Below are positions 3,805 through 44,141 of a stretch of 64,000 nt of DNA, piece after piece. The DNA is from Octopus sinensis (Eukaryota). The stretch covers positions 15,128,001 to 15,192,000 of the forward strand of contig NC_043015.1 in assembly GCF_006345805.1 (NCBI RefSeq), read 5' to 3'. Under the pieces are notes generated by a model. It worked only from the letters and a program-made list of their open reading frames with translations. It made no database searches and was not told the DNA's origin. Made by a program: the position numbers and the translations under genes. The stretch's first letter is position 1. Each line of letters opens with the position of its first letter.

Positions 3805-3806
3805 GT

Positions 3807-4187
3807 GGAGGCGCAATGGCCCAGTGGTTAGGGCAGCGGACTCGCGGTCATAGGATCGCGGTTTCGATTCCCAGACCGGGCGTTGTGAGTGTTTATTGAG
3901 CGAAAACACCTAAAGCTCCACCAGGCTCCGGCAGGGGATGGTGGTGATCCCTGCTGTACTCTTTCACCACAACTTTCTCTCACTCTTACTTCCTGTTTCT
4001 GTTGTACCTGTATTTCAAAGGGCCGACCTTGTCACTCTCTGTCACGCTGAATATCCCCGAGAACTACGTTAAGGGTACACGTGTCTGTGGAGTGCTCAGC
4101 CACTTACACGTTAATTTCACGAGCAGGCTGTTCCGTTGATTCGGATCAACCGGAACCCTCGTCGTCGTAACCGACGGAGTGCTTCCC
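3807..4187 (+). mobile_element. tRNA-derived SINE (family C), near full length
   Basis: Head GGAGGCGCAATGGCCCAGTGGTTAGGGCAGCGGACTCGCGG...GTTTCGATTCCC has A/B-box-like motifs. Related copies at 51110-51415 (+), 45554-45610 (+, truncated) and ~41173-41254 (-). Confidence 0.85.
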
Positions 4188-8707: not shown

Positions 8708-9006
8708 TTGCAAAATTTGGCAGACTCATTCCCGATTTCTGTTTAGTTGGAGGTATTTACTAATCAATAGAAATATGGCAAAACGTACAGCAAATTCCAA
8801 AATTGAAGATGAACCAGCTGACTTAAAAAAATCAAAGAATGAAAGTCTGGTAGAGAAAATTCAAGAATCTCGCATAAAATGTGCAAAATCTGTTCAGGAT
8901 TTTAAATTCAACAAAAAGCGAGTTCGTTTATTGAATGAAGTGGAAGAATTCCTTGAAGGATCTCAGGGTGTTCTTTATTGGATGGTCCGTGATCAAAGGG
9001 TGCAAG
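8708..9006 (+). CDS. phr: Photolyase exon 2 (internal ATG at 8775; ends [11 protein letters not shown])
   Basis: ORF 8700-9038; donor AAG|GTATGG at 9007. The 5' boundary is inferred from the acceptor TTTCTTCCTTTTTCTTGCTCAG; 8747 is an in-frame alternative. Confidence 0.88.
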
Positions 9007-10506: not shown

Positions 10507-13500
10507 CTTTTACTTGTTTCAGTCATTTGACTGCAGCCATGCTGGAGCACCGCCTTTAATAGAACAAATCGACCGCAGGACTTACTCTTTGTAAGCCTAG
10601 TACTTATTCTATCGCTAAGTTACAGGGACGTAAACACACCAGCATCGGTTGTCAAGCGAAGTGGGGGTACAAACAGAGATACAAACAAACACACACACAC
10701 ACATATCTCTTTTTACTCTCTTTTACTTGTTTCAGTCATTTGACTGCGGCCATGCTGGAGCACTGCCTTTAGTCGAGCAAATCGACCCCAGGACTTATTC
10801 TTCGTAAACCTAGTACTTATTCTATCTCTTTTCCTGAACCGCTAAGTTACAGTAAACAAACCAACATCAGTTGTCAAGTGATGTTGGGGGGGACAAACAC
10901 AGACACACAAACATATATGCACACATACATATATATACATATGTACGACAGGCTTCTTTCAGTTTCTGTCTATCAAATCCACTCACAAGGCTTTGGTTGG
11001 CCTGAGGCTATAGTAGAAGACACTTGCCCAAGGTGCCATGCAGTGGGACAGAACCCGGAACCATGTTGTTGGTAAGCAAGCTACTTACCACACAACCACC
11101 CCTGCACCTATATATATATATACGACGAGCTTCTTTCAGTTTCCATCTACCAAGTCCGCTCACAAGGCTTTGGTTGGCCCGAGGCTATAGTAGAAGGCAC
11201 TTATCCAAGGTGCCACGCAGTGGGAGTGAACCTGGAAACATGTGGTTGGTAAGCAAGCTACTTACCACACAGCCAATCCTGCGCATATATATATATGTTC
11301 ATAAACGGGCTGGTTACACCCACTGGCATAGGCTATGGGCCATGGTCTCACTTGGCTTGTCGGGTTTTCTCAAGTACAGCATATCTCCAAAGGTCTCAGT
11401 CACAAGTCATTGCCTCGGCAAGGACAATATGTGTGTGTGTGTATGTATATATGTACATATACATGCATATATATTCATGTATATGCATGTATATATATAT
11501 ATATATATATATTTATGTATATCCACACATCCACACGAAAATGTACATATACAAAGTCAAGAGTTAATTGTATTAAGTTACAAAAGGCTATTAATATTAT
11601 TATTATTATTATTATTAATAATAATACCAGTAAAAGAATATGTGCATTCCGCCATTCACAATACATATTAGATGGAAAATATCCCATAGAATACATCAAC
11701 AGCATAATATAGTAATATAATAACATAATAATATAATACAATACAATACATTATAGCTCAACAAACATATATAATGAAAAATATTCATTTACATCATAGA
11801 AAAAACCAGAAGTGTGCATGCGTATACATACATACAAATCAGAGTTCTGACGGTGATAGATATTTATCACCGTCAGAACTCTGATTTGTATACACACACA
11901 TGTTTATGCATGTATATTTATGCATATATATATATATATATACATATATGTTTATATATGTATGTATATTTGTATGTGTGTGTGTATATATAGGGAGGGT
12001 TTACGAAAAAAACAAAAGACGAAGACAGGTGGTGTACAAAACAAACAGATGTATTAGTATAACGCTGAGGAATAGAAAAAGCCTTTTACGTTTCAAGCCT
12101 ACGCTCTTCTACAGAAAGGGACACAGAAAAAACAAGGAGAGAAAAAAATGTGTGTAGTGGCTAACGATCTATCATGGCGACTAGTGCCGGAGAGAAGGGT
12201 CAAACACGAGTAGGAAAGTAGGGGAGATAACAAGGTAAAGATGACCCCCAACACAAAAGTGCCCCCAGCACAAAGTTGCGTGTGTGTATAAGAGAGTATG
12301 TATGTGCATGTGAAAGAGGGCTGGTGGTCTGGACGTGTGCGTGTAGGTGTGAAGATGTGAGGATGGGTGTGTGGGTGGTGTGATGTGTAATGTTATATGG
12401 TGTAGTGTGGTGTGGTGTGATGTTGTTGGGGGGTGGGGGAGGTGAGAGTGGGAAAGCACGGGTGTGGTGTGGGTTCGGTTGGGGTAGAGTTGGGGTTTGT
12501 GGGTAGGCAGAGGGTGGGGGTAGATGTGGATAGGATGGAGGGATGGGAAGGATAGGGAAGGTGGAGTAGGGGTGGGTGGGTATGTGAGGAGAAAGAGGAG
12601 GAGAGAAGAGACGGACTTCTTTCAGTTTCTGTCTACCAGATCCACTCACTAGGCTTTGGTTGGCCTGAGGCTATAGTGGAAAACACATGTCCAAAGTGCC
12701 ATGCAGTGGGACTGAATCTGGAATCATGTTCTATAATAATAAAGTTTAATAAATTTAAACATTATCTAAGAATGATCTAGTTTGTTTCATTATAAATCAA
12801 TCAGTTAATATGAGACATACTGTTTTTGCAATATTTATTTATTTTAGATAACTGGGCTATGCTGTTTGCCCAAAGACTTGCTCTTAAAGAAAAGACATCC
12901 CTTCATGTATGCTTTTGTGTGGTGGTTCCATTTCTCGAAGCAACCAAACGACATTATGATTTTTTGTTGAATGGACTGAAGGAAGTTGAAAAGGTTTGTC
13001 CCAATTTTGACTTTTCTGAATTTTGTTTTCAATTATGTTAGAAGTTATTAGTATGAATTTCAATTAAAAACAAGTGTTCAGTTAAATTGTTGCATTGGAA
13101 AGAAGAAAATATAGCAGTTAGATTCAACTTTGTTTGGTCACATGTTTGGTCACATGGAAATCATAAGTTGATCATGTGCATAAATACAATTTCTCTCCAA
13201 TCAACAACTTTTGTTCATATGATAGTCTGGCAGCATGACTAAGACTTTCTGTAAGCAAATCCTACAAATACGGTTCATTTTAGTGCAAAAAGGACAGAGT
13301 GATTCAGTCCTTGGTGGAGTTTGCTCTTGATTTTAGCTGTTCTCACAGCTAGGCGCAATAGGTGAAGAAACATACTACAGCAACATTTGCCTAAATGTTT
13401 TATATGCATTTTGAACGCAGTCAATGAGGGGTCTTATTTTAAATAAGGGATCAAAGTTTGGTTCTTCACGTACAGGGGTACTGCTAGTGTCTCTCACATG

Positions 13501-15713
13501 TAAATATTGGTTCAGTTTCATAAACTGTATTTGGGTCATAATACTGGAAATATACTGATTGCCAAAAGGTTCCTGATTGCTCCAGTAATTTGTAATTATG
13601 GGTAACTGTCTTATACCCATAATAATATCTATGGCAAAAAATGCCCATATTTCGTCTACGGTTGTAGGAAACCACAAGCTATCTTTTTTTCCAGCTTGTT
13701 TACATTCTGTGTAATGATTTGTTTCCGCAGTGATTACTTCAAACAAGCATGCTGGAAAAAATGAAAAGAAAACGTCTAATGGTTTTGCTTCCTGAGAAAG
13801 ACTATGAGTAGACCGTGTCTCCTCAGAAAAATTGTTAATAAAAACATTTTTTAACTTTTTACTCCATTCTGGTGTAAAATCATCCTCGCTGTCTATGCCA
13901 CTGCTTTCAGTTTCTTCAGAATTGCTTTTGGATACAGAAATATCCGATTCATTTTCGTCCACCATGTGCTTTTGCACTTCATTCATTCTTTTCCTCGATA
14001 TCTCGATATCTTCTGTTGAAAAGCCTTCAAATTTGGAATCACTGCTTGATAGCATGAAACTCCTCTCCATTTTCAAAGTTGAAAAAAATTAATGCCGATA
14101 AAAATGTAGAAAAAAATCTTCCAAAATTCACTGAGTTCAAATATCATGCCAAACAATGTCGGACACAATAACTCAACTGTTAGCAAAGTGAAATCACGTG
14201 TTTTAACAAATGTACCAATGACATTTGGGTTCAAATTTACATTTAAATAACAATGGGTTCTCTCGGCCGGGTTGGTCTTATGAACCAAAAAATTTTTGGG
14301 CCAGCTACAGCTGGGTTAGTAATGAAAGAGTTAATCAATGCTACATGTGTTTCTGCACTGGTGGGGAGTTTATAAAGGCTATACCTAATACATAAATCCA
14401 CCAGTGTGTCTTGAGGCTATTTATCTTATTGTCATTATTATTAACGGATCACAGTTAAAAATACATATTATAAGTCATATTAAATAAGAATATGAATACA
14501 AATATAATAAAATAAAAATATATAAATTACAAATTTCTTTTTTAAAAAATTTAAAAATTAAACAAATAAAATGTAAGGCTGTTTCTTTTTGTTCTTTCCT
14601 TAGGAATGCTGCAATTTGGATATTCAGTTCCATCTCTTGAAAGGAGACCCATCTTCTGAAGTATCCAGTTTGGTAAAAGAGTTGAATATCGGTGCTGTTG
14701 TCACAGATTTCAGCCCATTGAGACTTCCTAGAAAATGGTTGACTGATTTAACAGAGAATCTCCCTAAAAATGTTGGCTTGTGTCAGGTTAGACCTATTGT
14801 CCTCAAAATATTTGTAACGAATGTTTAATTAAATTAAAATAGAAATCATTTCTCTCATTACTGAACACTCATTTTACTATATTTCTTTTGTCTTTCAGGT
14901 GGACACACACAATATTGTACCATGTTGGATAACTTCTGAAAAGCAAGAATATGGTGCTAGAACTATCAGGAACAAAATCCACAGTCAAATGTGTAACTTT
15001 CTCACTGAATTCCCTCCTGTCATCAAGCATCCCCACGAAGCCAAAACTGAAGCCAAGGTAATCTTATATATTACTTTATTCTCTTTTCTATTACCTTTGC
15101 ATAGTTTATAATTATATCAGGATTGTTTAAATAATAAATTTGCTCTAATAAAGAGGTTTATAGTAAGAAGGTAGAAGAAAAAAAATGAAAAATGGTATTT
15201 TGTGCTAATTTTTTCCTTATTTTCATGTAGAATCTAAAAATACACAAACTTTGGATATATTTTGGGAAAGTTAATGATGGCTCTTGGCATACACATTTGT
15301 ATTGGAGTTCTTGATTAATTTAAATATGAAATTCTTACAGGAGCTGATTAGAGAAGAGCAGAGTGGATTGAAATGATTTTAGTAAACTATTAGAATTTAT
15401 TTTATGTATACTCAATGCATAGAGGACAAACTTGGGTCATCACATTTTAAAGATATTATTAAGGTGTAATTTATTTTAAACCAAAATTATCATCATGCCT
15501 ACAAAGTCAGAAAACAATACAGCTCCCATGACTTTCGGAAACATTTTTTCACGCTCAGAGTTGCTGAAGCATGGAATAAACTGCCTGCGTCAGTTGTTGA
15601 CTGCCATGACACTGCATCTTTTAAGGCCCTCATGCTTTCCGAAATCCGCCGAAACTTCACCTGATTATATATACACTTTAGATGAGTTGTAGTGCACCTG
15701 AGCACTGTACACA

Positions 15714-18455: not shown

Positions 18456-21400
18456 CACGTGTGCATACACCCAAACAACCAAACCCACACACACACACAC
18501 CTTCTGTATTTGTGTATATACAAGGGAGTGCTGAAAAGTTCCTGGCTTTGAGTAAAAGAAAATTTAAGAGAATCAATTATTATTTTATTCAGATTCACAC
18601 ACTTATTGCAGCGGTCCTTCAGTTATACTAATCCCTGTAAAAAGAACTTGGAAAGTTGGGTCTCGAATCAGGCCATTTGGGATACTCTTAAAGCCAGGAA
18701 CTTATCAGCATCCCCTCGTATATTTTCCATTTTTGTTTCAGACACCTGCTACTTCTCATTTCTCTCTAATTCAGAATTCTTCTCACAATCACTTCATTTT
18801 GCAATCAGTATTGTCTTTGGTGTAATTAGTTTTTCTGTACAGTTAGGGCTGGAACCAATGTTACACATCATATTCAGTTTGTCTTCTTTATCTTGAACAG
18901 GCAAACTTGTTTTTTCAAACTGTCTCCTCTCTCTTTAGCCTACAGATTGGAATACAATTATTGGGAAATCTGATACAGACGAGGCTGTCAAACCAGTGGA
19001 CTGGGCTAAACCAGGTACAGCTGCAGGTTATGCGACTCTGGAGAGTTTCTGCAATGAACGTCTGAAACATTTTGCCACAGAACGTAATGATCCTACCAAG
19101 AACAGTTTAAGTAATCTGTCTCCTTGGCTCCGATTTGGTAAGATTTATATTTAGTTATATTTGTAGAAATTTAACTGCAAATTTGGTTTTTCTTTTTTTG
19201 CTGTATCATCATCATCACCATCACCACCATCCTCTTCCTCCAGGGTTGCAGTTGATCTGTCAATCAATGGAACAGCCATGCAAGTGGCTGAGCACTCTAC
19301 AGACACAAGTAGCCTTAATGTAATTTATTTGGGAGATTCAGTGTGACAAAGCTGGCCCTTTGAAATACAGGTGCTTCTCATTTTTGCCAGCTGACTGGAC
19401 TGGAGCAATGTGAAATAAAGTGTCTTTCTCAAAGACACAATGTACTGCCAGGTATTGAACTCATGACCTTATTATCATGAGTTGAATACTCTAACTACTA
19501 AGCCACACACCTTCACACCAAGTATATATACAAACACAAACATAGACGCATACACACAATATATATATTACATATATATATATATATATATTACACACAA
19601 TATATATTATAAAGTATAATTATTTAGCTTCTTTCTAGTTGTTAGAAATTATTCATCCATTGCCATCATAATCATTGGGTAGACCATTTTTTCATGATGA
19701 CATGATGTTGATCTAAACCCTATAGAACCTGTCTGTGAGATTAATATCAGCACTTCATCGATTCTTCCTATGTCTTCCTTGGTCTCCTTTTTTTTACCAT
19801 GTGTTCCATTCACCATCAATTCACCACACCTTATCACCCTCACCCAGCACATATGTATATGCGTTATGGATCTGCTGTCAGTTTATGATAATAAGTATTC
19901 AGTTGTTTGAGTAACCAAATGACCTGATCCTTAAATTAGTATGTGAAGTGGCTGAGTATTCCACAAAAGCATGTACCATTCTTGTAATTTTCAAGGAGAG
20001 TCAAGTAGCCTGACATAGTGTGTGATGAAAGTGGACTTGTGAATCACAGGTACAGTGGGCTTGTCCACAGTTTCTGTTTACCTATTTTTCACTCACGAGG
20101 CTTGGATTGAGTTAAAGCTGTGGTAAAAGACACTTGCCTAAGATGTCATGTGGTGAGATGGAACATTGGGGCCTGGTGATCATGAAATGAATTTTTTAGT
20201 ATTTGACCTTGTTGCATTCATTCTGCCATGCATAATGTAGGTCAAGTGTGTTCTGCTATAGCTCTGGGCCAACTAGAACCTTGTGAGAGAATTTGGTAGA
20301 CTGAAGCTGAAAGAAATTTATTGTACATATGTATTTGTGTATCGTTGTCTAGACATCACATGATGATTGTAAATGAGTTTGTATATGTGTGTGTATATCT
20401 TCATATATATGTGTGTGTGTGTTCTTGACTTGACACCATATGCAAGTTGTGAACAACAGTCACCAGTCTTTTCTGAAAACATGTCCATTTTCAAAGGACA
20501 AAGGGAAATATTTTGTTACTTGGAAACAGGGGAGGGCTGGTGAGATTTTCAGAGAAAATCTGTTTCAGTGAATTTCATCTGACTCATGTAAACATGAAAA
20601 AGTGGATGTTAAAATGATGACAGTGATGATAATGACTTGTTGTGGTTGCTGCTGCTGTTGATGTTGTTTTTAAGGTGGTGAGCAAAAGGCTTAGCAGCAT
20701 TTCATTCGTCTTTATGTTCTGAGTTCAAGTACTGCTGAGGTTGACTTTACCTTTCATTTGTTTGGTGTTGATAAAATAAGTGCCAGTTGAGCACTGGGTC
20801 GATGTAATCGACTTACCCAACCCCTCAATCTTGCTGGCCTTGTGCCAAACTTTGAAATCATTATTATTATTGGGTGGTGAGCTGACAGAATCATTAGTAC
20901 ACTGGGCAAAATATTCAGCAGTATTTTGTCCGTCTTCACTTTCTAACTTCAAATTCTGCTGAGGCCAACTTTGCCTTTCATCCTTTTGGGCTCGATAAAA
21001 TAATTACCAGCTATGTACCTGGTCAATGTAATTGGCTATCCCTCTCCCCTAAATTTCAGTCCTTGTGCCTATAGTAGAAAGGATTATTATTATTATTATT
21101 ATAATGCAATGAGCTGACAGAATTGTTAGCATGCTGGACGAAATGCTTAGCGGAATTTTGTCCTTATGTTCTGAGCTTAAATTCCACTGGGGGTGACTTT
21201 GCCTTTCATCCTTTTGGGGTTGATGAAACCCCCTTTGTGTCTGTGTTTGACAACCAGTGTTGGCTTGTTTACATCCTTGTAACTTAGTGATTCGGCAAAG
21301 GGACCAATAGAATAAGTACTAGGCTTAAACAAAAAAAATATGTGTTGGTGTTGATTTGTTCAACTAAATCCTTCAAGGCACTGTCCCAGCATGGCCACAG

Positions 21401-22285
21401 TCAAATGACTGAAACAAGTAAAATATAAGTGTATAAATTAGTGTGTTGACCTAAAGTACTTTATTGAGTCTCTTTATTTTAAATTCAGTGGGAGCCATTC
21501 AGTAAAGAGAAATTGATAAAATATGTATCTGGCATAAGTACAGATATTTAGTGATCAAAATAATCAATAAAAACACCTAAAGGTGTGCTCCAGCATGACC
21601 ACATTTCAAAAAGTGGAACCAGTTAAATAATATTAAAATTCTGTTCAAATATCAATGAAATACATTCCAATTACTTTTGGTTATTCATCATTCTGTAAAC
21701 ACGTTTCATACCTCTCCTTTATTGTTTGTCCTCCTTAAATGTTCTCGTTTCTTTATATAATAGGTCACATATCTCCACAAAGATGTATACTGGTTGTTAA
21801 GAAATTCCAGAAATCTCACAAAAATAGTGTTGATGCATTTGTTGAAGAGGCTGTTATACGCAGTGAGCTGGCAGATAATTACTGCTATTACCAGAAGGAC
21901 TACGACAATATAAATGGTAGGATTTGAGTTTTTTTTTATCATTGATTCTGATTGAGTTCACATAATGATCTTAAATCTATAAAACCTATCTCTTTGTATC
22001 TCAGGAGCTTATGAATGGGCTCGGAATAGCTTGAAGCAGCATGCTAAGGACAAACGAGAATACATCTACTCAAGGAAAGAGTTTGAAGAAGGCAAGACTC
22101 ATGATCAACTCTGGAATGCTGCCCAAGTAAGAATATGTTTATGTTTAATATTTTTTAGTAAAATATTAGGCTGTGAGCTGGCAGAATCATCAGTACGCTG
22201 GGCAAAATGCTTAGCAGCATTTTGTCCGTTTCTACATTCTGAGCTCAAATGAGCAACAATAGAAAGGAAAAAGAGAAAGAGGTTG

Positions 22286-22333
<48 letters not shown>

Positions 22334-25300
22334 AAATGGTGAAGGAGAGAAAAAAGGAATTAGAGAAGGATGGGGTAGAAAACAGTATAGAGTAGAGTTG
22401 TATCAAAAAGGTTAAGAGAAACTTACTTAGAAATGGATGCATGGCGTTCAGTTTAATAATATATATATATGTATAGACACACACACAACAGCTTCTTTCA
22501 GTTTCTTTGTACCAAAACTACTCAAGGCTTTGGTTGGCCTGAGACTATAGTTAGAAGATGCTTGCCCAAGATGCAACACAGTGGGACTGAACCTGTTCTT
22601 ACCACACAACCATGCCAGCACCTATGTATATTTATTAATTTTGTCCAATTTCAAGAGAAATTGCTACTAGTTTCCTTTGAAGTCTTCTCTGAACAGTCAG
22701 ATGTCAGTTTACCTGGAAAGAAACAATGCAGTTATTAATATGATGAGTTGCAAATAATGCATGAAACGATCTCACAGCACTAGCATCACTCCTTCGTAGT
22801 CAATCTGTGACCTGTTCAGCCCACACTCATAAGTATCTTTTGGCCTAGTATTTCTTCTCATATGTTATTAATGATCGTCTAATTTCTTTGTTGAAGGTTA
22901 TCCTGATTATCAACCCAGTTTAGCTAATTTAAACATAGAAACTCTGTTATCTTTAGTCTGAGTGGAAGTTTGCTGTATCAAAGATTCACTTGTAGACATT
23001 TCAAGAAAATCATTGATGACTCTTTTACTCTTTTTACTTGTTTCGGTCATTTGACTGCGGCCATGCTGGAGCACCGCCTTTATTCGAGCTAATCGACCCC
23101 AGGACTTATTCTTTGTAAGCCTAGTACTTATTCTATCGGTCTCTTTTGCCGAACCGCTAAGTTACAGGGACTTAAACACCAGCATCAGTTGTTAAGTGAT
23201 GTTGGGGGGACAAACACAGACACACAAACAACATATACACACATTCATATATTTTTTTTTTTACTTGCTTCAGTCATTTTGACTGCGGCCATGCTGGAGC
23301 ACCACCTTTAATTGAGCAATCGACCCCAGGACTTATTCTTTGTAAGCCCAGTACTTATTCTATCGGTCTCTTTTGTCAAACCGCTAAGTGATGGGGACAT
23401 AAACACACCAGCATCAGTTGTCAAGCAATGCTAGGGGGACAAACACAGACACAAACATACATGCACATACATATATACAACGGGCATCTTTCAGTTTCTG
23501 CCTACCAAATCCACTCACAAGGCTTTGGTCGGCCCGAGGCTATAGTAGAAGACACTTGCCCAAGGTGCCATGCAGTGGGACTGAACCCAGAAGCAAGCTA
23601 CTTACCACACAGCCACTCCTATGCCTACATTTTATAAAGTTCAGTTATATTGGTATGGATAGGATACTGCACACTTGTCCACCTCTGTCAGTTATATTTG
23701 TTTATACTGATATTTCTTCAATGCTAGAATTGGTTGTGTATATAATATTGACCCCAGGTCAGAGGTGCTATTTTGCAGATTGTTTTGAGAAGTTAATCTG
23801 TGAATGTTTTATGTTATTTAAAACTATTTCTTTATTTTCAGATACAACTTGTCAAAGAAGGTAAAATGCATGGCTTTCTAAGGATGTATTGGGCGAAAAA
23901 AATTCTAGAATGGTCAACTACTCCTTCTGAAGCACTGGAAATTGCCATATTCTTAAATGACCGATATTCTTTGGATGGAATGGATTCCAATGGATATGTT
24001 GGTATGTATTTATCTTTGATAATATCTTCAGCTTTACAAAAGAGAAAAATGGTGAAATGTAATACACCTGTCATATCAGGAATACAAGAATTTCTTACTG
24101 ATAATATGTTTGGAACTTAAACACATATTGAACTTGAATCCTGAAAACCTATTTTATGTATCAGTTTTTATTGGCTGGTTTATAACATAAGGTGGCAATA
24201 TAGTAAAAGCACAAAATAGAGGAAATAGTCAAAATAGCTCATTTATTAAGGCAGTGGGTTGATAGAATTGTTAGATTGCCAAATAAAATGCCTTGGGGCA
24301 TTTGTTCTGGCTCTTTGTATTCTGGGTTCAAATAGCACTGATGTCAGCTTTGCTTTCCACACCTTCAGAGTTTCATAAAATAAAGTAACAATCAAGTATT
24401 TTAGTTGATTTTAATCAACTGTTGATTTCTACCATTGTGCAATAGTCTAGCACATCACAATACGTTTTCGTTGCTGTTGCTGCTTCTTCCTCTTTCTCTT
24501 AGTGTTCACTATTCCATCCATGCATGCTCTGACATAATTTGTGGGGGATGATTTTGTACAACCAGATGCCCTTCCTGTTGCTATCCCATGGCCAGACATA
24601 TTTTACATGGAAGACTAGAAACAAGCGATATGCTTGTTTACAACCATCACGATGTCAAAAGACTGATACATACGCACACACAGACACACATATACATGTG
24701 ACAAGCTTCTTCCAGTTTTCGACTATCAAGTTTACACAAAGCTTTGATCAGCCCATTTCTATAGTAGAAGACACTTGCTCAAGGTGCTGTATAGTGGATC
24801 ACCACATGGTGAGGAAGCAAGCTTCTTAACCGCACAGCCTTGCCTGCACTTCCCACATTGTAGGACCAAAATCCCTACACAACCATAGGGCCCCCAGGAC
24901 AGTTGAAGTCTCACACTGGTTGATGTTATCTGATATTACTGGAACTGTAACACACAGAGTCACACAATAGACACACCCACATGCTGATTCATTCAGGTCA
25001 GATCAAATGGTTGATAATAATGGTTTCAAATTTTGGCACAAGACCAGCAATTTTAGGGAGAGTGGGTAAGTTGATAACATTAACCCCAGTGTTCAACTGG
25101 TACTTATTTTATCGATCCCAAAAGGATGAAAAGGCAGAGTCAACCTCAGCAGAATTTGATCTCAGAATGTAAAGACAGACAAAATGCTGCTAAGTATTTT
25201 ACCTGGCATGCTAACAACTCTGCCAGCTAAACTTGTATTGTTTCATAATGACTAAATCAGAAACTGCAACTCTAGGGTCTGACTCTGGTTACAGCACAAA

Positions 25301-26040
25301 AAAATGTTATACTTATCTACAAGGGTAGATAAACTCAACAAAGAGTCAACAGCAAGCTATCAAACCAGGGGCCCCATTAGGGCTTTTGAGTCTAGTACTA
25401 CTGACTCTCTTTGGACACACTGGTGTGAGAAGTCCCTTGATAAGTGTGAGGGCTATGCATGGTAGCTTGAATCAGTTGTGGGTTTTCCTTTTGTGGCATT
25501 GTTGAAAATGACAAATACATGAAATTCCTAATTAAATACTGTTGATTGATTTTAGACTCATTATTCACAATTGCTGTCTCTTTGTAGGGTGTATGTGGTC
25601 TGTTTGTGCCATTCATGATCGGGCCTGGGGGGAAAGAAACGTCATTGGCAAAATTCGGATCATGACATATCAAGGCTGCAAGCGGAAGTTCGATGTCGAT
25701 TCCTACATTACCAAATATTGTTCCAAGAATTCTAAAAAAATATAAAGCCCAGCTCCCTTTCACTTCCATTTTTGTTCAGAACGTTTTTCAGGAATAAATT
25801 TTTCTTAGTTGCTGCTTTTTGGTTTTATGTTTGTCAGTCAGCTTTTAAAAGAGTCCTTTTGAAATGCATAATGGCTAGTCCTGTATATTCATTTGAAGTT
25901 GATTGTTATTAAAACTTCTTTTCATGCAAGATAAATTACATCCTTTCTTTTGGTCTTTTTTTTTCTGTAATATTCTATTACAATAGCTTAAAGCTGTAAA
26001 TAATTTTAGTATCATCATCATCATCATCATCATCATCATC

Positions 26041-26087
<47 letters not shown>

Positions 26088-29000
26088 TTAGCATCCGTTT
26101 TCCATGCTAGCATGGGTTGGACGGTTCAACTGGGGTCTGTGAAGCCAGAAGGCTGCATCAGGCCCAGTCTGATCTGGCAGTGTTTCTACGGCTGGATGCC
26201 CTTCCTAACGCCAACCACTCCATGAGTGTAGTGGGTGCTTTTTACGTGCCACCCGCACAGGAGCCAGATGGAGCTGGCAAACGGCCACGAACGGATGGTG
26301 CTTTTACGTGTCACCAGCACGGGGGCCAGGCGAGGCTGGCAACGGCCACGAACGGATGGTGCTTTTTACGTGTCACCGGCACGGAGGTCAGTCAGGGCGG
26401 TGCTGGCAACGGCCATGATCGGATGGTTCGCTTACTTGTTTCCGGCACTGGCATCACAGCCGCAATTTCCATTGATGTTGATCGACTTCGATTTTGGTTC
26501 TGCTTTCTGATATCTGATTTGATTTGATTTTTTTTTTTTGATTTTCACTTGCCTCAACGGTTCTTCACAAGTGGAGTTTTGTGTCCCAAGAAGGAAAGGT
26601 ATGTATAAGTCGACTGGCTACATACCAGGTAGAGGCCACGAGTTATGGTCTCACTAGTCTTGCCGGGTCTTCTCACGCACAGCATACTTCCATAGGTCTC
26701 GGTCTCTAGTCATTTCCTTGGTGAGACCTAAGGTGCAAAGGTCATGCTTCACCACCTCGTCCCAGGTTTTCCTGGGTCTACCTCTTCCACGGGTTCCCTC
26801 AACTGCTAGGGTGTGGCACTTTTGCACACAACTATCTTCAGCCATTCTTGTCACATGACCATACCAGCGCAAACGTCTCTCTTGCACACCACAACTGATG
26901 CTTCTTAGGTCCAACTTTTCTCTCAAGGTACTTACACTCTGTCGATTATGAACACTGACATTACACATCCATCGGAGCATACTGGCTTCATTTCTTGCGA
27001 GCTTACACATATCCTCAGCAGTCACGGCCCATGTTTCACTACCATGTAGCATGGCTGTACGTACACATGCATCATACAGTCTGCCTTTTACTCTGAGTGA
27101 GTGGCCTTTTGTCACCAGCAGGGGTAAGAGCTCTCTAAACTTTGCCCAGGCTATACTTACTCTAGCAGTTACACTTTCAGCACACCCACCCCCGCTACTG
27201 ACTTGGTCACCTAGGTAGCAGAAGCTATCAACTACTTCTAGTGTGTCTCCCTGGAACGTGGTAGAAGTTGGTCTCTGCACATTTCCAGTGTTTATTGCTC
27301 CTGAGTATCTGCCACAGACAAAAACTATTTTCCTAGTTAGCCTTCCTTTGACATTGCTGCAACTCTTATGTGTCCATAGCTTACACTTGGTGCACCTTAT
27401 AGAGTTTCTACCTACACCTTTTTTACATATTGAGCAGGGCCATCTACCTGAAGTCGTTTGTGATTGGTCTACCTTCCTACTTATTAGGACTTTGGTTTTG
27501 GCTAGGTTGATTCTAAGGCCCCTCGATTCTAATCCTTGCTTCCACACCTGAAACTTCTCCTCCAGTTCTGATAGTGACTCAGCAATTAGAGCAAGGTCAT
27601 CAGCATAGAGGAGCTCCCAGGGGCATCCTGTCTTGAATTCCTCTGTTATTGCCTGGAGGACTATGATAAATAGGAGGGGACTGAGGACTGAACCTTGGTG
27701 GACCCCAACCTCTACCCAGAATTCTTCACTGTACTCGTTGCCAACCCTCACCTTACTAGCAGCGTCTCTGTACATGGCTCGCACAGCTCTCACTAACCAT
27801 TCATCTATCCCTAGTTTCCTCATTGACCACCAGATAAGGGATCGGGGAACCCTGTCGAAGGCTTTTATCTTTGGCTAGGTATTTCTCCTGCAGCTGTTTT
27901 ACCAGGAATATAGCATCAGTAGTACTTTTCCCTGGCACGAACCCAAACTGCATCTGATCTAAGCTAACTCTCTCTCTCTAATTAGTTGGGCTATAACCCT
28001 CTCCGTAACCTTCATTACCTGATCCAGCAGCTTGATACTCCTGTAGTTATTTGTATCTAGAGCGTCACCTTTACCTTTGTAGCAGTTGACTATTATGCTG
28101 CTACACCAGTCATTGGGTATGACTCCTTCGTGTATCACCTGGTTAACTATACGGGTGACTAGGCTATAGCTGACACTACCAGATATTTTGAGCATCTCTG
28201 CAGTAATTCCTGATGAGCCTGGGGCTTTCCCTGTTTTCATGCTTGTAATTGCCTTAACTACTAAGGAACTGTCAACTCGGATTGCTGTTCCCTCTGTTGG
28301 GTCGACATTCGGCAGACTCTCTTTATCCCATTCATTTTCCTCATTCAGCAACCTTTCATAGTGGCGTCTCCAAACCTCTCTCTTTGCATCCTCATTTAGC
28401 GCAAGTGAACCGTCATCCTTGCAAACACATTTCTCTCCTACCACGTCACGATTCTCTCTCATACAATGTCTTGCAACATGAAATACTTCAAGTCTTTCAT
28501 CTTCACAGCGCAGAACATTGGCAAATTTTTTCTTATCTGCTTCCCCTCTGGCTAAATACACCTGCCTCCTAGCTTCCCTTCTGGCAGTCTGATACACTTC
28601 CCTGCTACCACCGTTCTTCCAGTCCTTCCAAGCCTCAATATTATTCCACCACCACGTTATTTTGGGTCTTGAGGGGACTTTGCACCAGCCACAGATCTGG
28701 TCAGTGGCTTTCAGCAGGTTGTCCCTCAGAAGCGTCCAGTTGTCTTCTACCCTATGTGTAGCTATACCCCCTTCTATTTTGTCAAAGGCTTCAAGTAACA
28801 TGTCTCTAAATCTCTGTCCATTCGCAGGGTCTTTAAGCTTCCAGACCCTTCTTCTCCATGTTGGTCGTCTTCTAGTCGTCCTCTTAGTCTTGATCCTAAA
28901 GTCACTAACTACCAGTCTATGTTGTGGGGTGCATTCTTCGCCTGGGAAGGTTTTGGCATTTATAAGCAGCCATCTTTCCCTTTTTCTGGCAAGGATGTAG

Positions 29001-30321
29001 TCGATTTGGCTAGTATGCCGGCCCGATCGGTAGGTGACCAGGTGGCTTGTCGGTTTCCTGAAGTTAGTGTTGCAAACCATAAAACTATTCGCATCGCAGA
29101 ACTCCGGCAGCCTGCTTCCCTCCTCGTTGCGGGAACCATAACCGTAGCCTCCATGTACGCCATGGAAGCCCCCAGCATGTCGTCCAACATGCCCATTGAA
29201 GTCACCAGCTACAAAGAGAAGGTCCCTGTCGTTCGTCAATGAGGTGGTCTGCAGTAGGGTGTCATAGAAACTGTCTTTCTGTCCATCGGGTAGCCCTGGC
29301 TGAGGGGCATAGGCTGATATAATGGTTGCTAATCTATGATGAAGCACTATTCTAATCTTAAGTATTCTGTCACTTACTCTGATTACCTCAAGTACCTTAT
29401 CTACTTACTCTGATTACCTCAAGTACCTTGAAGAAAAGTGTTTTAGATATTCAGGAAAACTGCGATTTTAAGCTGAGTGAGATTGGAAGGTGTGAGGTTT
29501 TTTTTTTTTTTAATTCTCTAAGTGATTGCTAATAAGTTAAGTGAAATAACTTTAACAATCAAAACATTGTTTTGCTAGAAGATTTATAACAACATTGATG
29601 AAAGAAATGATACAAACCAGCTACATTCATTTTGTGTCAGTATCAACACCATGGACTTGGTATGCAAAACGGTAGTTCTTCATTTTATGTTTTTGCATCT
29701 TAAAATCTTAAAAACATAGATGAAAACATCATCATCATCATCACCATCCTCCCCCTCCTCCATCCATTTTCCATACAGGCATGGGTTGGACTGTTTAACA
29801 GGAGCTGGTAAGGCCAGGAGTTGCACCAGGCTCCATTGTCTGTTCTGGAATGATTTCTATGGCTGGATGCCCTTCCGAATGCCAACCACTCCACAAAGTG
29901 TACTGGGTGCCTTTTATGTGGCACCAGCACCAAGACATAAATAATATCTTGTGATAGCTGCTCTCAATACCTTATATTTGTTTTTTTTTTAATTCTTGAA
30001 GTTGTATGACTGCTGCCAGATCTTCAAACTGCTCTGTAACAATTTAAACTATATATGTATATAATGTTAGAGGAGAGAATTGCAATACGGATTCTTCAAG
30101 CCAAGCCAAGTGGTAGGAGACCTGAGGGTAAACCAAGGACAAGATAGATAATATCCATAGGCATAGTAGTGGCTGTGTGGTAAGTAGCTTGCTTACAAAC
30201 CACATGGTTCCGGGTTCAGTCCCACTGCATGGCACCTTGGGCAAGTGTCTTCTACTATAGCCTCGGACCGACTAAAGCCTTGTGAGTGGATTTGGTAGAC
30301 AGAAACTGAAAGAAGCCTGTC

Positions 30322-33300: not shown

Positions 33301-35251
33301 AAAAGTAACCGATTGCTTTGAGTTAGAGTAAAGCAATAAGAGGAGAATTTTCTTGCTGTTATTCTGATCGATTTAGGGTTAGGGTAGCTGCTACAAGTCT
33401 CGTACATGTGAGTAGGACTGGTAAAACTGAATGTTCCAATGCACATATTTGGTCCTACAAAAGAGCAAACGCTTAGTTTGTGTAACTTAAATGAAGAGGC
33501 AAACATTTGGGTGACAGCAACTCTATGCAAAGTAATCATTCCAAGCAAAGTCATCAATGCCAAAAGAAAAAAAAAACAGCCAATAAAATTTGATTTGGTG
33601 ACAGATGCAGCAGAGCTTTCAGAAAGGAGTATAATTTCTTCTGTCAATTTAAGATGAGTAAGAATAATAGTGTAGAGAATTAATGAAAAGCACAGTTACT
33701 GATTTTAGAGGGGGAGGGGAAGCACTGACATAAGTGTCAGCATGGTTGTGTGGCAAGAACTTTGCTTCCCAACCACATGGTTCTGGGTTCAGCCCCACTA
33801 TGTGGCACCTTGGGCAAGTGACTTTTTATTATAACCTCAGGCTGACCAAAGGTTTGTGAGTGGAAGTGGTAGATGGAAACTGAAAGAAATCTGTCATTGT
33901 AAATATACATATGTGTGTGTGTGTCTTTGTGTATGTGTTTGTCCCCCTACCAGCACTTGACAACCAGTGTTGGAGTGTTTCTCCCTGTAACTTAGCAGTT
34001 CGGCAAAGGAGATTGATAGAATAAGTACCAGACTTTGCAAAAAATAAGTACTAGGGTCAATAAGTTCAACTAAAATTCTTCAAGGTGATGCCCCAGCATG
34101 GCTGTAGTCTAATGATTGAAGAAAGACCAAAACAATGGTGGAGTATGATAAACTGTCTGGGTGAACAACCACCTATGGCTATTATCAAATGCAGTGCATC
34201 TGCCTGCTCAACAACAGTAGAAGACAAAGTCAACATTTTCTACAAGAGTTTTGCTGCGAGCATTCTTAGTGAGGCAGCTACAAGAGTTTTTAGGTAAGAG
34301 CAAACCCACTACATGTTTTATTTGTTGACTGGAGAAGAACTTTTGACAGAAAATTCTTCTCTAGCTTGGTGGTCACTAAGAAAACTATGTGTAGATGGAT
34401 AGCATGTGGGAGTCATGTACAGTGGGGCTCTCAGTAAAATGAAAATTAGCAATGTATTTGGTGATAAATTTTGCAGGTAGATATGTATCCATAAGGGTTC
34501 TGTTCTCAGCCTCCTGTTATGGCTTGGAAATGATAGCTACCACAGGTGACTTTCTCCTATATTCTGAGCAGAATTACTTGGACCTTTGCTTAAGGACTTT
34601 TAAAGCCCCTTGTTATTTCTTCCAAGTCCTGGTGGGCCTATTAAAAAATTTTTTTTTTTTATTACTTTTTATTATTTTTTGTGATAGGAGGTGGAATTTG
34701 AACTCAAAACATACAGAACTATAGTAGAGGCTATAGTAGAAGACACTTAAGGTGCCACACAGTGGGATTGAACTCGGAACCATGTGGTTGGTAAGCAAGC
34801 TACTTACCACACAGCCACTCCTGCGCCTACATTCTCTACATTCTTAGTTCAAATTTCACCTGGGTCAACTTTGTCTTCCATCCTTTTGGGGTCAATAAAA
34901 TAAGGAATCAGTTGAGCATCTAGGATTGATATAATCGACTTACCCACTCCCCTGGAGTTGCTGGCCTTGTGCTAAAGTGTGAAATCAATATTTGTTTAGT
35001 AACAATAAAAGTTGCTAAAAAATTGACATGTTTGGTTTTGTTTGTTGTTCAACATTTTACATTTCAACACTGATCTTTACTTTGGCAACATCTTTTCTCT
35101 ATTTCTAGGTTGTATGTGGTCAGTTTGTGGAATCCATGACATGGGTTGGGCTGAACGACAGATTTTCGGCAAAATTCGTTACATGAACTTCAATGGATGT
35201 AAACGTAAATTTGATGTCAACCGATTTATAATGCGTTATAAGAGCAAGTAA
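8775..35251 (+). CDS. phr: Class II CPD photolyase (deoxyribodipyrimidine photo-lyase), spliced gene with two alternative last exons
   Basis: From ATG 8775, the exons sum to 1512 nt (503 aa) with exon 10A or 1497 nt (498 aa) with exon 10B; with putative exon 1, 539 or 534 aa. Class II motifs present: [81 protein letters not shown]. All introns are GT-AG. Confidence 0.95.
10502..11284 (-). mobile_element. Cluster of family A SINE modules (two tail modules, two head modules)
   Basis: Reverse complements of the tail (...GACTGAAACAAGTAAAAGA) at ~10502-10920 and of the head (GTGTGGTAAGTAGCTTGC...CCTTGGGCAAGT...GAAAGAAGCC) at 10946-11108 and 11123-11284. Confidence 0.8.
12848..12993 (+). CDS. phr: Photolyase exon 3 (DNWAMLFAQ...GLKEVEK)
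   Basis: Acceptor TTTTAG at 12847, donor AAG|GTTTGT at 12994; phase consistent with neighbouring exons. Confidence 0.95.
13375..14330 (-). mobile_element. piggyBac transposon 5' fragment with truncated transposase (PGBD4-like N-terminus) in photolyase intron 3
   Basis: 233-aa ORF 13375-14076: acidic N-terminus, then F.SFFP..I..ETN.Y, W.PTT.DEI.AF...[25 protein letters not shown]. Element end AGTAATGAAAGAG|TTAA at 14330/14331-34. The DDD core is absent. Confidence 0.85.
14604..14786 (+). CDS. phr: Photolyase exon 4 ([12 protein letters not shown]...VGLCQ)
   Basis: Acceptor CCTTAG at 14603, donor CAG|GTTAGA; contains VVTDFSPLR. Confidence 0.95.
14899..15057 (+). CDS. phr: Photolyase exon 5 ([10 protein letters not shown]...KTEAK)
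   Basis: Follows the 112-nt intron 14787-14898; donor AAG|GTAATC; contains [10 protein letters not shown]. Confidence 0.95.
15494..15745 (+). mobile_element. CR1/L2-type LINE 3' fragment with (ATT)n tail
   Basis: [35 protein letters not shown]...* (15494-15664), followed by a 3' UTR and ATT repeats. Confidence 0.75.
18939..19137 (+). CDS. phr: Photolyase exon 6 (PTDWNTII...[19 protein letters not shown])
   Basis: Hand translation is open (absent from the ORF track because it has no start codon); acceptor CTTTAG at 18938, donor TTG|GTAAGA at 19138. Confidence 0.95.
21764..21916 (+). CDS. phr: Photolyase exon 7 (GHISPQRC...[17 protein letters not shown])
   Basis: Acceptor TAG at 21763, donor ATG|GTAGGA; contains [14 protein letters not shown]. 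Confidence 0.95.
22005..22126 (+). CDS. phr: Photolyase exon 8 (GAYEWAR...[10 protein letters not shown])
   Basis: Follows the 88-nt intron 21917-22004; donor CAA|GTAAGA. Confidence 0.95.
23842..24001 (+). CDS. phr: Photolyase exon 9 ([24 protein letters not shown]...[10 protein letters not shown])
   Basis: Acceptor TTTCAG at 23841, donor TTG|GTATGT at 24002 (phase 1); FAD-binding region. Confidence 0.96.
25588..25745 (+). CDS. phr: Photolyase terminal exon 10A ([52 protein letters not shown])
   Basis: Acceptor TTTGTAG at 25587, phase 1, open to TAA 25743-45; AATAAA 48 nt downstream. Confidence 0.85.
25793..25798 (+). terminator. Candidate polyadenylation signal for exon 10A
   Basis: AATAAA followed by U/GU-rich sequence (TTTTCTTAGTTGCTGCTTTTTGGTTTTATGTTTG). 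Confidence 0.55.
26011..29347 (-). mobile_element. 5'-truncated, recently disabled RTE-clade LINE between exons 10A and 10B
   Basis: APE endonuclease ([21 protein letters not shown]) in 27959-29347 and RT ([17 protein letters not shown]) in 26654-27823. The frame is broken by a 2-nt slip in an AG run (~27970) and a deletion removing the usual LYLAFVDMEK before KAFDRVPR (~27865). The 3' UTR has ~62-bp tandem units and a (TGA)n tail at 26011-26086. Confidence 0.92.
30160..30834 (+). mobile_element. Composite SINE: family A head + (TA)n + RTE 3'-end module + (GAT)n + family A tail
   Basis: Head 30160-30323; (TA)n 30324-30359; RTE module 30361-30579; (TGA)n 30580-30606; tail ~30625-30834. Confidence 0.8.
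31240..32410 (+). mobile_element. Old RTE LINE RT remnant
   Basis: Broken MQFGFVP, FVDLEK..NRVP..VIW..KKLGVDE, GGLSES..ARVRAG, LHGSEAW motifs. Confidence 0.65.
34260..34560 (+). mobile_element. Old RTE LINE RT remnant
   Basis: Broken [29 protein letters not shown] motifs. Confidence 0.55.
35109..35251 (+). CDS. phr: Photolyase terminal exon 10B ([47 protein letters not shown])
   Basis: Acceptor CTTTTCTCTATTTCTAG at 35108, phase 1, open to TAA 35249-51; matches the animal class II C-terminal consensus as I know it. Confidence 0.9.
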
Positions 35252-35637: not shown

Positions 35638-35754
35638 TTAAGAGCTCTCTTCATGCTTCACATTTTATTTGTTGTAAAACATTTAAAACAATGAACCTTT
35701 CAAACTCAGGGATTTATCAGAATAACTTAACATTTGGTTTTATATGTGGATTAC

Positions 35755-35980
35755 ACTCTTTTACTTGTTTCAGTCATTTGACTGTGGCCATGCTGGAGCA
35801 CTGCCTTTAGTTGAGCAAATCGACCCCAGGACTTATTCTTTGTAAGTCTAGTACTTATTCAATTGGTCTCTTTTGCTGAACCGCTAAGTTACGGGGATGT
35901 AAACACACCAGCATCAGTTGTCAAGCGATGTGGGGGGGGGGGGCAAACACAGACACACAAGCGTATACACACACCTACAT

Positions 35981-36032
<52 letters not shown>

Positions 36033-36165
36033 TCGCGACAGGCTTCTTTCAGTTTCTGTCTATCAAATCCACTCACAAAGCTTTGGTCGGCCCGAGGCGA
36101 TAGTAGAAGACACTTGCCCAAGGCGCCACGCAATGGGACTACTTACCACACAGCCACTCCCCCAG
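35755..36165 (-). mobile_element. Family A tRNA-derived SINE (head + microsatellite + tail)
   Basis: Reverse complement of the consensus seen at 37573-37985. Confidence 0.8.
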
Positions 36166-37139
36166 TAAGAAAATTTTAATTTTTTTATGTTTTTGGTAGG
36201 TAAGTGTTATTTTGTATTTGCTCCTATCTAGAAATCAAAGGAAATGACTACTTTTCCCTTCAAACTTTGCTTTTGTGACCTAGACATCAATGTTTTGAAA
36301 CTCACCTATTTTCCATTACATTTCAGACAGATTCAGCACTGAGCTGCTGAAGCAGAAATATCATTATAGCAAATATTCTGCTCAATACCACAAATTTGCT
36401 CATCAGTTGCTTGAGCATGTCCCTTAGTGGCTGACAGTATGTGCATCTCTGATCATGAGCAGGAGTAGTGGAGGAGTATTATAACCATGTGTTGCAAGGG
36501 ATTCTTTTGGGGTTTGAATAAATGTAACAAAAGCAAAGTTTGAAGGAAATATTAACAGTTTTTCATACTTTCTTGGGATAAGCAAATAGGAAATAACAGT
36601 TGCTACCAAAGGACAAAAATCACGTTACACAGTGTTATCAGTGATACTTATGTAACTGGCTACTGGTGATTTAGCAGCTGAAACAACAGGTATTTATGTG
36701 TGAGAAGTTGACATGATGTTTATATTTTTCTACCTGGATTATTGAAACACCACATTTATAAGTTAATAACGACATGTATTCTTTTAAGTAGAAACTTCAT
36801 TATATTTCATTTGTAACTGCATGCTGGGAAGATGTTTGTCTCTGATGTTACTGTTTTGCATTATGAGCTTTGCTTTTATTTTGATTCTACAGTCATTAAT
36901 TACTTTTGTTTATCATATCATTACTTTTTAAAAACAATTAAAATTCTTTTGAATGTAATTCATAATTACATGTTTGCTCAGGGAAATGGAACTCCATATT
37001 AAACTTTTAATTTACTGTTGACAACCACATCTGAAGGTGTCGGTTCCAGATAGTGAGCCGAGTATTTTTTTTATAACACAATAAAAGCTTGAAATAAACT
37101 TCATATAAATTTTAGCTTGTCTTGTCTTTGCAAAGAAGT

Positions 37140-43018: not shown

Positions 43019-44141
43019 TCAATCTACATCACAAGAAATCGTTTCCGAAAACTTTGATTTTTCGTCAATGCAAGAACTTTTTCTATTAGTTAACAGAGGA
43101 ATGGGATTATTTTCCGGCGGCATTATGGTTGTATCAAGGAGTTTATTATAGTTATCTGTATCACAATTAGTCGTAGTGCAGTCTACATCACTGTCGGAGG
43201 AATTAAAGCCATTGTTAATATTGGTATTGGTAATTCTGCTGTGGGCAAGCAGTGGCACTGGTTCATTTATTTTCAGTCTATCATGAATTCGTTTATGTCT
43301 CTCTAGATTACTCTTGTGGCTAGTTGCATAATCACAATGTGGACAGTTATAGTCCTTTTGTCCATTATGGACAGACAGGTGACGTCTTAGCAAAGCTTTC
43401 CGACAGAATCGTCGCCCACAAAACGGACAGGAATAACCGTTGTGATGAAATATTGTGATGTGTTCCCTCAGAGACGCTTTCGTTGCGAAAGTGACACCAC
43501 AGCATTCCAGGACTTTATCGCAGGCTTGGTGCATTGTAGAAATGTGTCTTTTTAGATTGTTGCGTCTGTCTGTGACATAACGACAGTGTGAACAAGGAAA
43601 TAACTTACCACGAAATGTGTTACACACGAGCATAGCAAGTTCTAAATAGTTTCTGTTCATTAAAGGAGCTTTGTATTTGAAATAAGATAAGTCAGTTGGC
43701 ATACTGGCCTGCTTGAATTGTTGGTGATACTCCACTAGGCTAAGTGGCCGTGTATTGCTTGCAAGAGAAGTTGGTGGAGGATACAGTGAATATTGCAACC
43801 AAGCAGCAGGTAAGCCGAGAGCAGTGGGCAAAGATGCTGCCGGAGATATTATTGGAATGCTGCTGTGAAGGTAGTGACGGCTGCTGGAACCACCAAACGG
43901 AGTAAAAGAACTGCTTGGGCTTTTTGTGTTACCCTTATCTGAGTTTGAGCTGGGAGATTGTAAATAGAATCGATCTGTTCGATCTATCGATGCGGGTGAG
44001 TGAAGAGAAAGGCGATCTGTTCGCTCCATTGAACCAGGAGAGTATAGAGACAGGCGTTCTTTTTGGTCTGTTGATCCAGGCGAGGAGTTACTTCTTTCTT
44101 GAGACAAACGAGGAAGAATATTTTCTGCCCGAGAAGAACCA
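43019..44141 (-). CDS. C2H2 zinc-finger protein (4 fingers), main/terminal coding exon
   Basis: Fingers CSHC..HISTMH, CC..HITIFH, CPFC..HLSVH, CPHC..HKRIH. The ORF-track start at 44107 is TTG. Upstream are a branch point (CTAAT), a pyrimidine tract and a TAG acceptor at 44143-42, with the frame open from 44141. First in-frame ATG at 44029. Confidence 0.88.

Follow-up and report, generated by a model that had tools for sequence, protein, structure and literature searches.

The class II cyclobutane pyrimidine dimer (CPD) photolyase of the archaeon Methanosarcina mazei (MmCPDII) provides the structural frame of reference for this enzyme family as well as the residue numbering used below (2xry chain index minus 18). 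In MmCPDII, Trp421 stacks on the flipped-out dimer, and the loop between helices alpha17 and alpha18 is termed the bubble-intruding region (BIR); Asp428, Trp431, and Arg441 make up a conserved bolt (PMC6126647). Arg429 fills the gap and touches the orphaned purines, and it can be replaced by Gln, Met, or His (PMC6126647). Here, we analyzed a 64-kb stretch of the Octopus sinensis genome (NC_043015.1, positions 15,128,001 to 15,192,000, forward strand), hereafter called the window, to which all Octopus sinensis coordinates refer. It carries a complete class II CPD photolyase gene on the plus strand, which ends in two alternative last exons, A and B. The whole prokaryote likeness of exon A resides in two adjacent residues, Arg429 and Ala430. 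We consider it probable (roughly 0.75) that a tandem duplication of the last exon, older than the split of octopods and decapods, produced A and B, that these give rise to two isoforms with alternative BIRs, and that copy A converged on Arg-Ala. No cephalopod photolyase isoforms, photolyase alternative splicing, or photolyase loop-swapping exons were described in the literature searched.

The window consists of animal-type, AT-rich DNA (~36% GC) with many repeats. The gene model reconstructed from it comprises eight constitutive coding exons and the two alternative terminal exons, with GT-AG borders. An initial annotation, made from the sequence alone, had proposed two alternative last exons, 10A with the motif HDRAWGER and 10B with HDMGWAER. 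Both peptides proved exact, and the two model proteins are letter-for-letter identical to RefSeq entries XP_029648244.1 (isoform X1) and XP_029648245.1 (isoform X2), so that the X1/X2 pair is already annotated. Annotations of the pair also exist for O. bimaculoides and O. vulgaris, as does one of a B-type form for Argonauta hians. The "exon 10" of the initial annotation is the ninth coding exon of our model; RefSeq may count a 5' untranslated exon. The features of the gene are given below; for coding exons 1 to 7 they derive from the gene model, whose translation equals that of RefSeq.

8775..9006, plus strand: coding exon 1, with the ATG at 8775
12848..12993, plus strand: coding exon 2
14604..14786, plus strand: coding exon 3
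14899..15057, plus strand: coding exon 4
18939..19137, plus strand: coding exon 5
21764..21916, plus strand: coding exon 6
22005..22126, plus strand: coding exon 7
23842..24001, plus strand: coding exon 8, ending in ...DSNGYV plus G, with a donor at 24002 common to exons A and B
25588..25745, plus strand: alternative last exon A (10A), isoform X1, 503 aa; matches RefSeq, with orthologues in Sepia mRNAs and in contig L090
25617..25658, plus strand: BIR of exon A, Asp428-Arg429-Ala430-Trp431...Arg441, by alignment to 2xry
25620-25622, plus strand: Arg429 codon CGG of exon A, by alignment to 2xry
25623-25625, plus strand: Ala430 codon GCC of exon A, by alignment to 2xry
25793..25798, plus strand: AATAAA poly(A) signal, 48 nt past the exon A stop
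35109..35251, plus strand: alternative last exon B (10B), isoform X2, 498 aa; near the standard animal type except for Met429
35138..35179, plus strand: BIR of exon B, Asp428-Met429-Gly430-Trp431...Arg441

Exons A and B have canonical AG acceptors, both in phase 1, and split the same Gly codon with exon 8. The first AATAAA past exon B lies 1.27 kb downstream.

Profile matches, residues, and fold identify both isoforms as class II CPD photolyases with predicted repair activity. They match TIGR00591 (phr2) over profile positions 2-453 of 453, with 704.9 bits for isoform A and 715.6 bits for isoform B (cut-off 550.05), and there is a match to Pfam PF00875 (98.9 bits). Alignment to 2xry showed that Tyr345, Trp360, Met379, Trp381, Trp388, Asn403, Glu301, and Arg256/Asn257 are all kept, while Trp305 of MmCPDII is replaced by Arg, as in rice and other eukaryotes. 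AlphaFold2 predicted the same fold for both isoforms, with a confidence (pLDDT) of 89.2 for isoform A and 88.3 for isoform B. In Foldseek searches, the model of isoform A matched best the rice enzyme (3umv; TMt 0.93, rmsd 1.7 A) and MmCPDII (TMt 0.90-0.92), and class I enzymes reached only ~0.7. Structure prediction of both isoforms, which the initial annotation had proposed, thus bore out the class II fold but did not discriminate between the isoforms.

Each last exon encodes its own Trp421 and an entire BIR including the Asp428-Trp431-Arg441 bolt; exon A also encodes helix alpha18 and the tail. Exon A is characterized by Arg429-Ala430, Ile437, Ile442, and Thr444. Exon B contains Met429-Gly430 in octopods or Gln429-Gly430 in the decapod described below, together with Phe437, Tyr442, and Asn444. 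The M. mazei sequence that the initial annotation had given for comparison agrees exactly with PDB 2xry.

We compared residue frequencies position by position in 83 prokaryotic and 127 non-cephalopod eukaryotic segments. Every one of the 80 class II photolyases sampled from genome contigs of bacteria and archaea contains HDR(A/P)W. Among the eukaryotic sequences, residue 429 is Gln in 99% and residue 430 Gly in 100%, and HDQGW is found in ~120 other animals and plants. The only strongly prokaryote-like positions of exon A are 429 and 430, while Met420 and Cys424 are strongly eukaryote-like by frequency. Ile437, Ile442, and Thr444, which are invariant and specific to A exons, occur at 0-1% in both groups. 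A summed eukaryote-versus-prokaryote log-odds score was calculated over 43 positions, with and without 429 and 430:

O. sinensis exon A: +11.7 with all positions, +33.6 without 429/430
O. bimaculoides exon A: +7.3 with all positions, +29.3 without 429/430
Sepia exon A: +2.5 with all positions, +24.5 without 429/430
O. sinensis exon B: +42.0 with all positions, +36.1 without 429/430
Argonauta exon B: +32.8 with all positions, +26.9 without 429/430
Range of eukaryotes: 18 to 87 with all positions, 12 to 70 without 429/430
Range of prokaryotes: -108 to -37 with all positions, -86 to -15 without 429/430

With all positions, A exons are intermediate between the two groups; without 429 and 430, they fall inside the eukaryote range and are indistinguishable from B exons. 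On average, exon A of O. sinensis is identical to eukaryotic segments at 28.3 of 44 residues and to prokaryotic ones at 25.7 of 44, and its best matches are those with a horseshoe crab and with an arthropod-like exon (32/44 each). The initial annotation had read an archaeal pattern at several diagnostic positions of exon A. This holds for Arg429 and Ala430 but was overstated for 432, 437, 444, and 457: Gly432 is also the state of 11% of eukaryotes; Thr437 is particular to M. mazei, with Phe in most prokaryotes and, in exon A, an Ile that is typical of neither group; Thr444 occurs in ~1% of both groups; and Tyr457 is not conserved in Sepia exon A.

The arrangement of the two exons places their duplication deep in cephalopod history. 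Nucleotide identity between exons A and B is 62%, with saturation at synonymous sites, so their split is ancient; an exon-level alignment (25577-25697 versus 35098-35218) gives 72% identity. In O. bimaculoides (L009), exon A lies at ~24885 and exon B at ~31406. A search of short predicted proteins with an A-type profile led to two further contigs, L090 and L091. The former is a 189-kb genomic contig of a Sepia-like decapod, on which exon 8 (from 586), exon A (3705-3862), and exon B (4906-5057) follow each other with last-exon acceptor phases as in Octopus; its exon B keeps the ancestral Gln-Gly (HDQGWAER). Each of the three loci (the window, L009 of O. bimaculoides, and the decapod contig L090) thus has exactly two last-exon copies in the same order and phase. 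Because the layout of exon 8, A, and B is common to Octopus and a decapod, the duplication predates the split of octopods and decapods, which is hundreds of millions of years old. A and B also have in common some states that few other eukaryotes show, namely Val423 (5%), Phe445 (3%), and Ile458 (11%), which weakly suggests a common cephalopod ancestor of the two exons. Homology of the flanks was dropped as evidence of duplication, since none extends past 11 nt upstream of the exons; the remaining matches are dispersed short interspersed nuclear element (SINE)-like repeats. The first 18 nt of the two exons (encoding CMWSVC) are identical at 17 of 18 positions, compared with 62% overall (25590-25718 versus 35111-35239).

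Exon A is used in Sepia mRNA. A cluster of Sepia proteins (P0002 and relatives), 68% identical to the octopus protein, derives from ~2-kb transcript contigs of several RNA-seq runs, and every full-length member ends in the A type; one of the runs, SRR25114244, appears in a study of larval RNA-seq in Sepia esculenta (PMC10442824). The Sepia 3' untranslated region past exon A is collinear with the genome, and an AATAAA follows the exon A stop by ~50-110 nt in Octopus, the decapod contig, and Sepia transcripts. In decapods, exon A is under strong purifying selection: between Sepia and L090, nonsynonymous (dN) and synonymous (dS) divergence are 0.019 and 0.77 for exon A, and 0.024 and 0.546 for exon 8. 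Between Octopus and Sepia, amino acid identity is 75.6% in exon A and 69.3% in the rest of the protein.

The Arg-Ala pair is not confined to prokaryotes and cephalopods. The second contig found with the A-type profile, L091 (European Nucleotide Archive (ENA) ERZ27245609, k141_1120924; 1-526), is a 526-bp metagenomic contig that contains an arthropod-type terminal exon with HDRAWGER. The acceptor is canonical and sits at the same codon, the intron position and phase are as in cephalopods, and the exon is otherwise an ordinary animal sequence. A scan of viral contigs with the exon peptide confirmed no relative. We further searched 1.84 billion representative proteins, which gave 596 matches, and inspected the best 150. 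Among these 150, positions 429/430 read QG, MG, RA, RG, HG, TA, NA, and others in various sequence frames; RA occurs in several Met420 frames with Lys-rich tails, HDMGW is also found in a number of sequences, and the A-type combination IGKIRIMT is present in no other sequence. The change from Gln-Gly to Arg-Ala requires two point mutations (CAG GGC to CGG GCC, the latter as in Octopus). The initial annotation had considered that HDRAW-type C-termini might turn out to be common in animals; they are not, with none in ~120 named or near-full-length sequences and one in the arthropod-like fragment. Two further proteins vary at the same sites. P0162 and its cluster members (on ENA contigs up to 1.4 Mb) represent a vertebrate-like terminal-exon fragment (...QFERKYNK) with HDRGW, whose Arg429-Gly430 is a possible intermediate between Gln-Gly and Arg-Ala in another lineage. 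P0004 from Cichorium intybus, a plant class II photolyase, contains the otherwise rare Ile442-Met-Thr444 of cephalopod exon A, yet has HDHGW; it suggests that positions 442 and 444 co-vary and changed in parallel.

Taken together, these results point to the following course of events. In the cephalopod stem, before octopods and decapods parted, the ancestral last exon would have been duplicated in tandem. Splicing of exon 8 to A, with polyadenylation just downstream, would produce isoform X1, and skipping of A with splicing of exon 8 to B would produce isoform X2; in Octopus, the choice between them may be regulated. The isoforms share the antenna domain, the flavin adenine dinucleotide (FAD) domain, and the electron-transfer chain, and differ at plug residue 429 and its surroundings; the long-term retention of both exons would amount to swapping a DNA-contacting loop. 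Copy A would have returned convergently to the prokaryotic Arg-Ala and gained its own Ile437, Ile442, and Thr444, with no contribution of foreign DNA. In isoform A, the charged Arg would plug the gap of the flipped dimer and contact the orphaned purines, as does Arg429 of MmCPDII, while isoform B would have a neutral plug; in that case, affinity, or the lesions or DNA contexts preferred, would not be the same for the two isoforms. Of the three origins offered by the initial annotation, a convergent neofunctionalized copy is therefore favored, given that the likeness is limited to 429/430 and that the layout recurs in a decapod, whereas a captured foreign exon and a retained ancestral exon are disfavored.

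Several observations weigh against this scenario. The shared splice phase had been taken as proof of duplication and was down-weighted: because exon 8 always ends at the same point, an alternative exon can function only if it begins at the homologous codon, which makes the phase weaker evidence. The use of both exons in Octopus is deduced from RefSeq models (X1/X2 in three octopods), the functional difference between the isoforms is wholly a matter of deduction, and in both AlphaFold2 models the confidence of the loop in the bubble-intruding region is <50. Between O. sinensis and O. bimaculoides, exon A shows four nonsynonymous and one synonymous change, compared with zero and three in exon B. 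This 4:1 pattern fits relaxed constraint, though its contrasts are not significant (p 0.16 versus 12:17; p 0.14 versus 0:3). A bacterial class II photolyase, P0231, which lies in a dense bacterial gene neighborhood (L092, 6001-7365) and has the C-terminus GVMWSICGVHDRAW, combines Met420 and Cys424 with Arg-Ala. These two residues were therefore dropped as strict eukaryote markers, and residue states by themselves cannot exclude a foreign donor. Finally, in a free tree of the 44-residue segment, the A clade is placed at the base of the eukaryotes, and A and B are not sisters; constraining A and B together is 7-10 log-likelihood (lnL) units worse under LG+G4 (approximately unbiased (AU) test, p 0.15-0.23).

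The segment trees, whose construction the initial annotation had suggested, were run under LG+C20 with posterior mean site frequencies (PMSF) and under LG+G4, with and without columns 429/430, and with the additional cephalopod and arthropod-like exons. Under the C20 mixture, the tree uniting A and B exceeds the quick free tree by 11 lnL units. None of the topologies was rejected, including A with B, A with prokaryotes (AU p 0.51), and all eukaryotes together (AU p 0.15-0.57 for these constraints and 0.15-0.64 overall), and 44 residues thus lack the power to settle the origin. Since the arthropod-like L091 exon can be forced among prokaryotes with the same p of 0.51, the segment tree merely tracks the two residues. 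A strongly supported grouping of exon A with exon B as a recent duplicate, which the initial annotation had set against its own view, did not emerge: the grouping is tolerated, the support is not strong, and the duplication is not recent. Octopus and Sepia fall together in the tree of the core (exons 1-8), as a single clade inside the animals. In a quick maximum-likelihood core tree (alignment A3, columns 238-709), the cephalopods are joined to sequences of crustaceans and insects (SH-aLRT 96) rather than to those of bivalves, gastropods, and a chiton, which may be a long-branch artefact.

These data bear on two alternative origins, both of which are unparsimonious and unlikely. According to one of them, part of a class II photolyase gene from a bacterium or archaeon was inserted past exon 8 and exonized as a terminal exon. 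HDRAWGER is indeed the prokaryotic state; bacteria with GxMWSICGVHDRAW exist, as P0231 exemplifies, making a donor for the 5' half of exon A conceivable; a grouping with prokaryotes is not rejected by the AU test; and in Octopus the G+C content at third codon positions (GC3) of exon A is 0.53, at the upper extreme of core windows (core 0.34, exon B 0.37). However, GC3 of exon A in Sepia is an ordinary 0.37 (core 0.33), which renders this measure uninformative and led us to discard it as a sign of foreign origin, and the AU test tolerates L091 among prokaryotes equally well. Outside 429/430, exon A is as eukaryote-like as exon B and on average nearer to eukaryotes, Ile437, Ile442, and Thr444 are no more prokaryotic than eukaryotic (0-1%), and Arg-Ala is two point mutations away from Gln-Gly and recurs in other eukaryote-type sequences. 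The landing of a homologous fragment exactly at the 3' end of the host photolyase would also have a very low prior compared with tandem duplication. We regard foreign capture as extremely improbable. The other origin, a duplication of pre-bilaterian or greater age in which A kept an original Arg-Ala that was lost in every other animal lineage, would agree with the free segment tree, in which the A clade branches as the sister group of the remaining eukaryotes. Such a basal place is, however, what one expects of a fast-evolving copy with two convergent residues, and it lacks significant support. Many parallel losses would be needed, since the ~120 other animal and plant proteins have a single Gln-Gly type; IGKIRIMT does not recur among the best 150 matches; and the rare Val423, Phe445, and Ile458 are common to A and B. 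We therefore judge deep ancestral retention highly improbable.

A different concern is that exon A of Octopus could be a decaying or rarely used relic, with X1 an annotation product that has no role and B as the working exon. The substitution pattern described above points in this direction, as do the polypyrimidine tract of exon A, which is weaker than that of exon B, and the fact that the assemblies searched contained no octopus transcripts encoding either exact isoform. On the other hand, exon A of both O. sinensis and O. bimaculoides retains its open frame, stop position, and poly(A) signal, and an isoform of the same length (503 aa) is annotated in O. vulgaris. Between the first two species, exons A and B are 96.8% and 97.9% identical at the nucleotide level without indels, while the flanking introns are 90-95% identical and do contain indels. 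With A being the form that is expressed in Sepia and strongly constrained in decapods, and with neither contrast of the 4:1 ratio being significant, a relic seems very improbable.

Why two isoforms would be kept is more speculative. Coleoids may have retained both over hundreds of millions of years because BIRs with Arg429-Ala430 and with Met/Gln429-Gly430 give different substrate spectra, such as non-TT dimers, single-stranded or unusual DNA, or another lesion class, which could partly offset the lack of a (6-4) photolyase, reported to be absent in cephalopods (PMC9498864, PMC7553075). In this specific form, we consider the proposal improbable.

The surroundings of the gene are rich in repeats. 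Between exons A and B lies a non-long-terminal-repeat (non-LTR) retrotransposon (26013-29746), with open reading frames (ORFs) on the minus strand at 26654-27823 and 27959-29347. Its domains are a reverse transcriptase (PF00078) and an endonuclease-reverse transcriptase (PF14529), the latter scoring under the Pfam cut-off, and a long (ATC)n microsatellite lies in front of it (~26010-26090). The retrotransposon block has no counterpart at the orthologous site of O. bimaculoides and explains most of the difference in the spacing of A and B, which is 9.5 kb in O. sinensis and 6.5 kb in O. bimaculoides. Intron 2 carries a 233-aa ORF on the minus strand (13375-14076), a transposase fragment with a match to the piggyBac-type domain DDE_Tnp_1_7 (PF13843, E 1.5e-22). 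A SINE-like repeat is present in many copies in both orientations (e.g., 10531-11700, 23055-23640, and 35726-36176) with (CA)n/(TATG)n-type microsatellite flanks, and gives rise to long but spurious ORFs in which certain peptides recur. Past the photolyase gene, a 362-aa single-exon ORF on the minus strand (43019-44107) encodes several C2H2 zinc fingers. As a similar zf-C2H2 gene is found downstream of the O. bimaculoides photolyase gene (L009, 38148-39176), the neighborhood is syntenic in the two octopuses.

Evidence for the role of plug residue 429 has so far been limited to a single archaeal structure and to conservation of the sequence. Cephalopods provide a natural, long-kept enzyme pair that is identical save for the DNA-contacting loop and tail, which makes the question of Arg versus Gln/Met directly testable. 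The locus constitutes neither a new enzyme family nor a new mechanism of gene evolution, and its main value is that of a natural experiment on the photolyase BIR. It also calls for caution, as a short prokaryote-like motif does not equal horizontal transfer: two residues carry the whole signal, and the pair recurs in other eukaryote-type photolyases.

Compared with MmCPDII (PDB 2xry, 2xrz, 5zcw), the octopus enzyme belongs to the same family and fold (Foldseek TM 0.90-0.92, 46% identity). Trp421 and the Asp428-Trp431-Arg441 bolt are common to both octopus exons, and Arg429-Ala430-Trp431-Gly432-Glu433-Arg434 of exon A is identical to the archaeal sequence. In contrast, the octopus core is of the usual animal kind, being extended at the N-terminus and carrying Arg rather than Trp at position 305; residues 420 and 424 are Met and Cys in exon A but Ala and Gly in MmCPDII, and residues 437, 442, and 444 are Ile, Ile, and Thr in exon A but Thr, Tyr, and Ser in the archaeal enzyme; and the archaeal gene contains neither introns nor an alternative C-terminus. 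The core shares 58-63% identity with the standard animal and plant enzymes (rice 3umv, Gallus, bivalves, and gastropods). Exon B corresponds to their last exon as its regular orthologue, which in the decapod keeps HDQGWAER, and the intron position before GCMWS is also found in the arthropod-like L091. Unlike these enzymes, however, the cephalopod gene has a second last exon and HDRAW, which were seen in no other named animal sampled, and octopod exon B contains Met429 in place of the near-universal Gln429, an octopod-only state among the named or near-full-length sequences sampled. In comparisons with the octopus protein, P0017 from Armadillidium nasatum (696 aa) scored 887 bits at 56% identity and the Sepia protein 823 bits at 68%; P0017 may hold a partial tandem duplication of photolyase sequence. 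In its layout, the locus resembles known tandem-duplicated alternative last exons, with two homologous exons in tandem that have the same acceptor phase and their own stop codons and keep their order across long-separated lineages. What sets it apart is that its exons exchange the loop with which a DNA-repair enzyme contacts its substrate.

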